From Sminthopsis crassicaudata (lineage: Eukaryota), in assembly GCF_048593235.1 (NCBI RefSeq), contig NC_133617.1:524500958-524564957 (forward strand): a stretch of 64,000 bases of DNA, in the 5' to 3' direction. The notes beneath the pieces were generated by a model. That model saw only the letters and a list, made by a program, of their open reading frames with translations. It did not search any database and was not told the origin of the DNA. Made by a program: the position numbers and the translations under genes. Position 1 is the first letter of the stretch. Every line of letters starts with the position of its first letter. Shown piece after piece: positions 19,340 to 22,900 of the stretch.

Positions 19340-19930
19340 TGTAGCGGACCCAGAAGCTGAGGGTCATAGCTTAATCGGAGGAGAACTCCGGTTTTCCTTA
19401 TTAGAGCCTCTGAGCTCTCTATTCACTGCGTCACCTAAATGCTGCTCCCTTTCACTTTATGCGTCCCTGCGCCTGGTCCCAGCGTGGGCCTCGGGCTCTG
19501 AATGGAAAGTGGGAGCTGCAGGAAAATCTTAACAGCTCATTCGGTAAACTTTGGAAATAGTTCGTGCTTTGCCTTTGTGTACATTATGTCCTTCTGGAGT
19601 CGCCGTAGCTTCCATCCGTGGCAAACCTCAAACATGGAAGGTCCAAGCCGGAACCGCGCCGGCTGCCAAGCGGATGTACGGGGTTAAAGGTCACCCGTTC
19701 CCGCAGCTGCTGCTTCTGGCGGGATCTGTGACAGAGGCGCCGGTGAACCGAGATGTCAGGCAGCAAGGGGCCCGTGGCACTGCAGTGCTGGGAGCGCTTT
19801 GGTTCCAGGAGCCCCCGTAGTTGCACAGTAGCCCCCGACGGGAGCTTGTGCTGGGAGGCTGGGGGCGGGCCCGGGCAAGGCCTTCGAGCTGCTCTCACGG
19901 TGATGGATCGCGGGAAAGACACCCCCTCCC
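19340..19930 (+). promoter_or_regulatory. CpG-rich promoter and first exon of RUSF1
   Basis: Abrupt rise in CG dinucleotides around ATG 19753. Confidence 0.7.
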
Positions 19931-22900
19931 CTCAGGAGGAGAGTATAGAAAGATATACCTCCCACTCTGTAGAAGGAAGTGTAAAGAGACCACTCCAAGA
20001 GGGGAAAGTGCGGAGACCCCTCCTTTAGGGAGGAAGTACCTCTGGAAGGTTCTAAGGAAACCCCCACATTATGAAGTAACTTAGAGAGAAGAAACCAGAA
20101 ACACTTCCTCCCCCCAAAATAAGGGGTGGGAGGAGGGAGGGGAGGGACAGGTCCTCCAAATAGAGACAGGCAGAACAGAGATGGTCCCAAGCAGGAAGAG
20201 AGGCAGAGATAACCTTCATCCCAGACTTCTGTAAGAGAGAAAACTCACTTCCTTCTCTCCTTCCTCCCCTCCCCCCAGGCTGTGTTCCTGCCCCTTGGCT
20301 TCCCTGACAGTGTCAGCCCAGACTACCTGCCGTACCAGCTGTGGGACACAGTACAGGTTATTATCAGGCCCCCTAAGGGGGAGGGAGAGGGATGGGAGGA
20401 TAGAACATCAGGAGGTCATCTAGGTCAGACTTCTCTTTTTCCAGAGGAGGAACTTGAGGCCCAGATTGGTCCACTTGAATCCGGGTCTCTTTTTCTTTTC
20501 CCCAGTGTTCTTTCCATTCTTTACTTTGGGGCGTTATGACAGGACTGGCAGCTTGATGTAGTGGAGCGAGCCCTGGGCTGTAAGTCAGAAGACCTGTTCT
20601 AGTTTTAGGCTTGCCCTGCTTATTCCTGGTCTTTTTCTGGGCCTCTGTAAAGGGAGGGGGTTTGACTAAATGATCTCTAAGAAGGTCCTTTTAAACTGTG
20701 ATGACAAATTCAAAGCTGGGAGAACGATGACATTTCTCTTACCAGATATCCTTTCACCATCCAGGCTTTTGCCTCCAGCCTCACAGGCTCCTTGGCGACC
20801 CAAGCTGTCCTTCAGGGGGTTGGGGTGGGGGATGCAGCTGCTTCTGTCTCAGCTGCCACCATCACTTGGCTCTTAAAAGGTGAGCTATGATCGATATGCC
20901 AGTCGCCAGTGGCTTTTATCTTTTTAGCCTTGTGTTTCCAAGTTGATGCTTTCTTTTCTCTTCCCCCAAATGCCTGCCACACTTTCATAACTAAGTCCCT
21001 TTCCCCCACCTGGTATTCTGGGTTCTTGTCACTAAGGAAAGGAACTCATTCTGCTGTGAATTTCCCCCCTCTAATCCATTCTGCATGAGTCTACTCAATT
21101 TTTACCTAGCCTTAATCAGAATGGATATTGCCTCAGTCACACTGAATCCTGGTTTAGTTCAAAAAGGCCAAGGTCTCATACTGCATCCAGGGCCAACTTG
21201 TCCTGATCTGTATCTGGTCACTGGACTCTAATGGCTCTGGAGAAGCAATTGAAGTAGGGGACCTTGAATAGCTCTCCCTCACTTAAATCAATTCACTTGC
21301 AAGTTATGATGCTTCTCTGATGTGGTGGTCCTTTTCCAGAAAGGATAAACAATACCAAGCTGGTCTTTCTAATGCACAATTCTGACAAGGTCATTCCCAG
21401 TCTTATTTGAAAATCTTCAGTGTCTCCTCATTGCCTTCAAGGCATGAGTTCTTAACTTTTTTCTGTATTAAGGACCCCCTTTGGAAGTTTGGGGAAACTA
21501 TGGACCTCTATTCAGAGTAATGTTTTTAAATGCATAAATTCACAGGCCACTGATTTAGAATGATATACAGATCTATGGCTCAAAGCTTCCACACTCCCAT
21601 CATTCCAATTTTGCCATTTTGATTAATTCTGGTTTTTGTACCTACTTTCCAGCTCATGCTAAACATTCATTCCCACTTTTTCCTTGAACATTTTACTCCG
21701 CTTGGAATTCAATTCAGTGTATATTAATCGCTTACAAATATCCAAGGCATTGCACTCATTGCTAAAGGTTTTTGTGGTGGCTAGAAACTGGAAATTGAAG
21801 GGATGCCCACCAATTGGAGAATGGTTGAATAAATTGTGGTATATGAATCTTATGGAATATTATTATTCTATAAGAAATGACTAGCAGAATGAATACAGAG
21901 AGGCTTGGAGAGATTTACATGAACTGATGCTGAGTGAAATGAGCAGAACCAGGAGGTCATTATACACTTCAACAATAATACTACATGATGATCAATTCTG
22001 ATGAACATAGCTCTCTTCAACAATGAGAGGATCCAAATCAGTTCCAATTGATCTGTAATGAACAGAACCAGCTATCCCCAGAGAAAGAATACTGGGAAAT
22101 GAATATGGACCACAACATAACATTTCCACTCTTTCTGTTAATGTTTGTTTACAGTTTTGTTTTTTTCTTTCTAAATCCGATGTTTCCTGTGCAACAAGAT
22201 AACTGTATAACTATGTATACGTATATTGTATCTTGTATCTAACATATACTTTAACATATTTAACGTGTATGGGACTACCTGCCACCTAGGGGAGGGGGAG
22301 GGGGGAAGGAGGGAAAAAATTGGAACAGAAGGTTTTGCAAGGGTCAATGTTGAAAAATTGCCCGTGCATATGTGTTGTATATTAAAAGCTATAATAAAAA
22401 AAAAAACTAAAAAAATGCCACAGGAGAGGTGAAGATAAATTAGACCAAGCCATTAAGGAGTTTATATACTTTCTTCTACTGTTTCCACCTGTCAAAAATC
22501 CTTATTTAATCACCAGCAAGAAGTCATTCCTCCCTTTTCCATATTCCTGTAGCATTGTTTGTACTACTCTAAGGCATTTATCATTTTTAATTTTTTATAA
22601 AAGTTACTTGTAAGTTGCTGATCTCAACTATCCAACTGTTTCATGAGAACAGTCATTGTGTTTTAATTATTTTTCATCTCCTTTCCTGTCCTCTCCCCAA
22701 ACAATTTACACATAATAGATGAGAACCAATTACTTGCTAAATTAATTAACAAACATTGAATTTGGAGATCTTTTGGCCTCATTTGTCCTCTCTTCTACCA
22801 TAGATGGAACTGGAATGCTGGGGCGAATTGGTTTTGCCTGGTTGATGGGGTAAGTTCATCTTTCTTCCAAATCAGGTCTGATTAAATCAAGAGCTTTCAT

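Follow-up and report, generated by a model that had tools for sequence, protein, structure and literature searches.

In the marsupial Sminthopsis crassicaudata (the dunnart), the RUSF1 gene contains a spliced phase-0 intron of 379 nucleotides (nt), and placental mammals have uninterrupted coding sequence at the same site. On balance we favour the reading that this intron is ancient, that the dunnart has kept it, that placentals lost it by de-intronization, so that 25 extra codons now stand in its place, and that a direct repeat in the dunnart copy marks a later insertion. The sequence analysed, called the window below, is a stretch of 64,000 nt (NCBI RefSeq assembly GCF_048593235.1, contig NC_133617.1, positions 524,500,958 to 524,564,957 of the forward strand), and all coordinates refer to it. 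A preliminary description, written from the sequence alone, had recognized an extra intron within RUSF1 exon 1, bounded by a direct repeat and with no obvious canonical donor, and had proposed as its origin a rare intron gain by insertion, a non-canonical GA-AG intron, or an ancestral intron lost in eutherians.

RUSF1 in the window

The dunnart RUSF1 exons were translated, scanned for domains and searched singly, not as a joined protein. Four exons matched PF04884 (UVB_sens_prot) in a profile scan, at 39-44 bits each (cut-off 28.3), and elephant RUSF1 (P0252) mapped with tblastn as 12 colinear pieces spanning 19753-28575. The locus is a RUS-family (PF04884) gene, colinear with elephant RUSF1. 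Its 5' coding part consists of the following features:

19753-19899, plus strand: RUSF1 coding exon 1, with the ATG and 49 codons, ending ...RAALT; a contig ends at 19900 and the splice joint leaves at 19899 in four runs.
19900-20278, plus strand: phase-0 GT..AG intron of 379 nt between codons 49 and 50; joint 19899/20279 in runs X8, X11, X14 and X17.
19900-19935, plus strand: first 36 nt of that intron, open in the exon-1 frame (VMDRGKDTPSPQ), which look homologous to the 25 extra placental codons.
20279-20356, plus strand: 78-nt exon of 26 codons (AVFLPLGFPDSV...WDTVQ), matching PF04884 positions 14-38 (E 9e-10), with joints on both sides.
20357-20764, plus strand: next intron, GT..AG; joint 20356/20765 in all four runs.
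20765-20879, plus strand: following exon (AFASSLTGS...WLLK), ending in phase 1 and joined to an exon at about 22803, from contigs, the PF04884 scan and tblastn.

The 26-codon exon begins AVFLPLGFP and ends WDTVQ, and the loose contig end after the exon at 20765-20879 reads into the next exon. As the preliminary description had noted, the N-terminal frame runs into a stop at 20028: the open reading frame (ORF) that starts at the ATG at 19753 is 91 codons long and ends with the TAG at 20026-20028. In the tblastn alignment, residues 1-56 of the elephant protein cover 19753-19920, and so continue past the end of exon 1 at 19899.

The dunnart intron is an ordinary GT-AG intron

We compared positions 19300-21000 with four RNA-like contig runs of organism A, each from a different study. 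These runs were labelled RNA by guess only, and each carries the spliced joints of two introns. The joint of the neighbouring intron, 20356/20765 (GT..AG), served as a positive control for splicing; because it is present in all four runs, these runs contain spliced RNA. The joint 19899/20279 is likewise present in all four, skipping 379 nt with GT..AG ends. The spliced ends at 20279 that the preliminary description had wanted as a check thus identify the donor, at 19899 in every run, and the acceptor at 20278 that it had predicted is the one in use. The donor is ACG/GTGATG, with its GT at 19900, and on a rough position-weight score it outranks every other in-frame donor in the exon. The supposed lack of an obvious canonical donor was therefore mistaken, even though this very GT had been listed among two in-frame alternatives; the G of the second candidate lies at 20008, and further in-frame GTs at 19969 and 19981 had been missed.

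At the 3' end, an uninterrupted 29-nt pyrimidine tract (20248-20276) leads directly to the acceptor AG at 20277-20278, whose use is given by the contig joints. A candidate branch-point-like CTCAC lies at 20244-20248, 31 nt upstream of the AG. The interval 19900-20278 is an ordinary U2-type GT-AG spliceosomal intron in phase 0. The dunnart exon structure is correct as annotated, and no non-canonical splice site is needed.

A GA-AG intron at 19936-20278 had been suggested on the ground that removing these 343 nt leaves the frame intact, and removal does join a codon boundary to a codon boundary. This repeat-to-repeat arithmetic is the only point in favour of such an intron; the RNA joint uses the GT at 19900, and a 19935/20279 joint was found in none of the four contig runs. 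The worry that the interval might be an assembly artefact fares no better, as 21 runs from 8 studies contain half or more of the words sampled from 19600-20500, and a contig spans the interval in all four of the runs examined. Both explanations are refuted by these data, and we give them virtually no weight.

An unspliced contig (19871-20304/20307) also occurs in all four runs, and positions 20383-20724 of the next intron are bare in three of the four. In these respects the intron resembles known retained or weakly spliced introns: it has a read-through contig in every run where the next intron mostly has no contig, and its donor, GTGATG, is without a G at +5. These observations point to an intron that is retained or removed slowly and has a weak donor, with DNA carry-over in the runs as another possible source of the unspliced contigs; contig depth gives no proportions of the spliced and unspliced forms. 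The unspliced form would end at the TAG already mentioned. The runs differ from the window by single bases at 19474, 19738, 19817, 19821 and 20060; the T>C difference at 19821 is seen in three of the four runs, and the window may carry the minor allele there.

The same position is occupied in distant outgroups

Scanning metagenome contigs with the dunnart ORF 20213-20536 identified an animal contig, L001, for which the nearest named protein comes from a sea cucumber. In the DNA of L001, a 78-nt exon (SVFLPQGYP...WDTVQ) stands between ttatttcag and gtaaag, and the next exon has its own AG and GT. A further word search found two more sequences, P0322 and P0323, in which the same 78-nt exon stands alone. 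Another sequence, P0324, has a clearly teleost-like N-terminus; in it, ..VVRTFK and SVFLP are separated by 30 in-frame residues, V...Q, and WDTAQ is followed by VGQQ. From these features P0324 reads as unspliced teleost sequence with a 90-nt intron exactly at the site.

Two sets of gene models mark the same place. The Phrynosoma platyrhinos model P0018 (KAH0626369.1) joins ..LWDFFM directly to AFASS and so skips exactly the 26-codon exon, which argues that the exon has introns on both sides in this lizard. What distinguishes the Lampetra models P0056 and P0271 is five residues, VCVLC, exactly at LT/SVFLP, as an alternative choice of splice site would give. The differences in P0018 and in P0271/P0056 may be real alternative splicing or annotation slips, and we used them solely to mark an intron at this site. 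In L001 itself, a tandem duplication (940-1060 and 1125-1280) takes in the acceptor region together with the first 42 nt of the 78-nt exon and is broken off by a run of T; it looks like a decayed partial exon duplication.

Judged from these sequences, an intron immediately before the residues (S/A)VFLP is very probably ancestral. Because the outgroups share both the site and the phase, the dunnart intron does not occupy a new position. A gain at a new position would go with outgroups that have no intron here, and L001, P0324, P0018 and P0056/P0271 point to one. This speaks against the proposal of a new intron created by insertion at a duplicated CAG/G; the insertion model survives only as an enlargement of an existing intron, or in a variant in which the intron was lost and then re-created.

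Placental exon 1 is uninterrupted and contains 25 extra codons

RUSF1 proteins of many animals were gathered by a representative search with the 62-codon exon at 25439-25624. Placental ORFs came from word searches and are short ORFs on unspliced contigs, for example P0227 (on a 19-kb ENA contig), P0289-P0320, P0237 and P0260; three human-looking or human-named sequences (P0292, P0298 and P0299) were excluded from alignments and profiles, and although a local BLAST database of all the collected proteins included them, no conclusion depends on them. More than 20 of the unspliced placental ORFs extend without a break from the ATG past WDSVQ into the next intron (VS.. or VR..). Since the upstream part of these ORFs is identical to annotated proteins, placental exon 1 is uninterrupted, and the single human exon given in the preliminary description agrees with these non-human ORFs. 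The 26-codon exon is thus separate in the dunnart and the outgroups and fused with exon 1 in placentals. A word search with the lynx N-terminus had placentals only among the matches listed, and no marsupial ORF came from one with the unspliced dunnart ORF 20213-20536.

Together with the outgroup introns, the uninterrupted placental ORFs bear out the earlier suggestion of an ancestral intron lost in eutherians. The loss nevertheless does not look like a clean deletion, for 25 codons stand at the site. The spacing from the motif E(R/Q)(F/Y)GS to VFLP is 55-58 residues in 163 of 165 placental-type proteins, as compared with 34-35 in turtle, skate, lamprey and teleost and 32 in the dunnart exons. 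The extra segment is missing from none of the 165, and no isoform among them splices it out. Two placental unspliced ORFs, P0302 and P0308, have a spacing of 44, indicating that part of the segment has been deleted in them.

We aligned 91 distinct non-human placental N-termini. The extra block lies between ..GAFT and AVFLP and is 25 codons long in 79 of them. It begins with V in 38 sequences, among them those of elephant, dugong, golden mole, armadillo, sloth, primates and tree shrew, and with A in 40. At the other end, 41 sequences have L and 17 have Q, the latter including armadillo, sloth, primates and tree shrew. Dunnart exon 1 ends in ..GLRAALT, which aligns gap-free with placental ..GLSGAFT; the match continues into the dunnart intron, where VMDRGKD faces VKPEGRD. 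The best ungapped placements of VMDRGKD and TPSPQ, both encoded at the start of the intron, are colinear inside the placental segment, with VMDRGKD directly after the end of exon 1. When the 12 codons at 19900-19935 are appended to exon 1, the score against a profile hidden Markov model (HMM) of the placental N-terminus rises by 4.5 bits. An equal gain was reached by 5 of 2567 stop-free 12-codon translations taken from the gene's other introns, and by none of the 136 that start with V. Tandem duplication was considered as a source of the 25 codons and set aside: the placental N-termini have no internal similarity, with a median p of 0.46 for an internal repeat over the 91 sequences.

These comparisons make it probable that the placental intron was lost by de-intronization. 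A short ancestral intron, in frame, would have stopped being spliced in the placental stem and become translated sequence, and the first 36 nt of the dunnart intron would be the counterpart of the resulting 25-codon segment. A short ancestral intron is plausible because the teleost intron is 90 nt long and the placental remnant 75 nt.

A direct repeat and a 329-nt block within the dunnart intron

The preliminary description drew attention to near-identical repeats at 19923-19936 and 20266-20279, and the two copies do match at 13 of 14 positions. The elements concerned are:

19923-19936, plus strand: upstream repeat copy, 14 nt, CCCCTCCCCTCAGG.
19937-20265, plus strand: block of 329 nt between the repeat copies, which supplies the CTCAC (20244-20248) and the start of the pyrimidine tract.
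20266-20279, plus strand: downstream repeat copy, CCCCTCCCCCCAGG, which is the acceptor in use.

With the acceptor copy fixed, 19753-20265 (513 nt) was shuffled 5000 times with its dinucleotide content preserved, and only 22 of the shuffles placed a copy with no more than one mismatch upstream of the acceptor; the 14-nt direct repeat is beyond chance. The repeat unit consists of a pyrimidine tract and CAG/G, that is, an acceptor. Two more near-copies of CCCCTCCCCYCAGG lie in the window, at 34722-34735 on the minus strand and at 51206-51219 on the plus strand, where 0.17 would be expected. CCCCTCCCCYCAGG is in essence the consensus of a strong acceptor, so both near-copies may serve neighbouring genes as acceptors.

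The flanking repeat leads us to favour, somewhat, a lineage-specific insertion as the origin of the block. Of the marks of a retroposon, the block has the flanking direct repeat of 7-20 nt (here 14 nt); its sequence has no visible A or T tail, and neither a repeat family nor a source copy turned up within the 64-kb window, which contains no other copy of the block. No tandem or local origin was detected either: Tandem Repeats Finder (TRF) reported only a 12-nt two-copy array within the pyrimidine tract, and a self-BLAST of 19400-20900 gave nothing colinear. An RNA-gene-derived element or a microRNA was rejected as a source, as Rfam families, including weak microRNA-like ones, matched the block only far below threshold (best 28.6 bits, threshold 97). 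Organism B, a second species label, has 0.82 of the sampled words; without the block the share could, by arithmetic, not exceed about 0.59, and organism B thus seems to carry it too. The intron folds no better than shuffled sequence (z = -0.98). A G-rich stretch inside the block (20123-20145) is 78% complementary to the pyrimidine tract at 20251-20273, with which it is paired in the minimum-energy fold.

The insertion would have been a later event at the old acceptor, duplicating its pyrimidine tract and CAG/G and enlarging the intron. The downstream copy would now serve as the acceptor, helped by the pyrimidine-rich end of the block and its CTCAC. The old intron would once have been longer, with about 39 nt lost later, and its splicing would never have been interrupted.

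Alternative histories of the intron

Several observations weigh against the history that we prefer. The outgroup evidence consists of a single ORF or gene model per lineage. The similarity between the dunnart intron start and the placental segment is weak, the 4.5-bit gain being reached by 12 of 200 composition-preserving shuffles of the tail. Remnants of the splice sites in placentals are visible only as V and Q codons, and at the 3' end the choice between Q and L is equivocal. Fragment-aware MAFFT and Pfam can also align placental ..SPPLSGLL with the ancestral end of exon 1, which would place the extra residues upstream of the site. Finally, if the repeat is a true target-site duplication (TSD) and nothing was deleted later, the interval from donor to acceptor would have been 36 nt before the block arrived, less than an intron needs, which favours re-creation.

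In that last scenario, de-intronization had already taken place before marsupials and placentals diverged, and a 329-nt insertion with a 14-nt TSD into what was by then coding sequence later revived splicing: the duplicated acceptor and the old donor, which is the Val codon GTG following ..ALT, together remove the insertion and the 12 remaining extra codons. Introns of 36 nt are below any workable length. The non-random repeat speaks for such a re-creation, as does the fact that the sequence without the block and one repeat copy is 36 nt, in frame, open and placental-like; the repeat, intact at 13 of 14 positions, suits an insertion much younger than the marsupial-placental split, and the spliced product regains the ancestral spacing. 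It would nevertheless require that an intron was lost and regained at exactly the same site, a rarer course than retention, and deletions within introns are neutral, so that 36 nt may be the remainder of an ancestral intron that was once longer. The similarity observed is, by estimate, about that expected after roughly 160 million years of neutral change. No relative was seen to have an empty site, and the share of words found in organism B exceeds what is possible without the block. We consider loss and re-creation unlikely. Continuous retention along the marsupial line is, by contrast, probable in our judgement: uninterrupted splicing is the more likely course because deletions in an intron cost nothing and retention is the default.

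A clean loss of the placental intron, for example through a reverse-transcribed copy, with a separate gain of about 23 residues slightly upstream, would make the resemblance of 19900-19935 to the placental segment a matter of chance. It draws on the same alignment difficulty, in that MAFFT puts the placental gap upstream with ..TASSPLSGLL aligned to the turtle and skate exon 1 ends, and the PF04884 alignment of the elephant protein extends back through SSPLSGLLA (residue 67, profile position 5). We find it quite improbable, since ..GLRAALT, an exon end fixed by RNA, aligns ungapped to ..GLSGAFT and on into the intron, VMDRGKD has its best fit at precisely the profile positions that follow and TPSPQ further along the segment, only 5 of 2567 random intronic tails score equally, and no internal repeat in the placental N-terminus suggests a duplication. 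Less probable still, to the point of being hardly credible, is a true new gain in marsupials that happened to fall, by parallel use of a proto-splice site, where fish, lizard, lamprey and invertebrates already have an intron. The repeat-flanked block and the lack of an intron at this site in placentals would suit it, but it requires at least four independent gains at one codon boundary and phase, and the lizard model P0018 already points to an intron in an amniote outgroup.

Other features of the locus

Two further features of RUSF1 were seen outside the intron under study:

19356-19543, plus strand: alternative upstream non-coding exon, whose donor TCG/GTAAAC (at 19544) is joined directly to 20279 (GT..AG), so that the ATG exon is skipped.
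23584-23616: 11-codon mini-exon of RUSF1, SRLDCDAKKWR.

The joint from 19543 to 20279 occurs in run X8 alone, in one contig (19356-19544; joint 19542/3 to 20278/9), and a transcript with it would be without the first 49 codons. The 11 residues of the mini-exon are absent from some models of other species (P0008, P0020), and it may be an alternative exon across vertebrates.

Comparison with known systems

In mammals, accounts of intron loss usually speak of clean removal, and intron gain has, to our knowledge, been described as almost absent. The conserved gene RUSF1 appears to have given up an ancient intron in the placental stem, with the intron's sequence preserved as 25 codons just before the conserved RUS domain. 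In the marsupial the counterpart continues to be spliced, which makes a pair of sister lineages open to test. Residues of the human protein of the type VKPEGRD...PLSGLQ would then be a placental addition of intronic origin and not part of the ancient protein. Re-creation, if it is what happened, would be a rare mammalian case of an insertion that revived old splice sites.

De-intronization, in which an intron turns into exon sequence through loss of splicing (PMC4443532), has been studied in Cryptococcus (PMC2740785) and in fission yeasts (PMC3629103). The placental RUSF1 gene resembles such cases in that an intron present in outgroups is absent from one lineage, in which in-frame sequence of a length divisible by three stands exactly at its position, and in that the segment often starts with a GTN codon (as V). 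It differs in setting, as the published cases come mainly from fungi and plants (PMC4443532, PMC2740785, PMC3629103) and ours concerns mammals, the placental stem and a conserved housekeeping-type gene, with the comparison made at the protein level. The dunnart intron also shares with insertion-type intron gain, as treated in the mammalian literature (PMC3257199, PMC3002245), a block flanked by a 14-nt repeat ending in CAG/G whose downstream copy is the acceptor. It departs from that type in that the position pre-exists in outgroups, the donor lies 36 nt upstream of the block and not at its edge, and the block is without an A tail and without other copies in the window.

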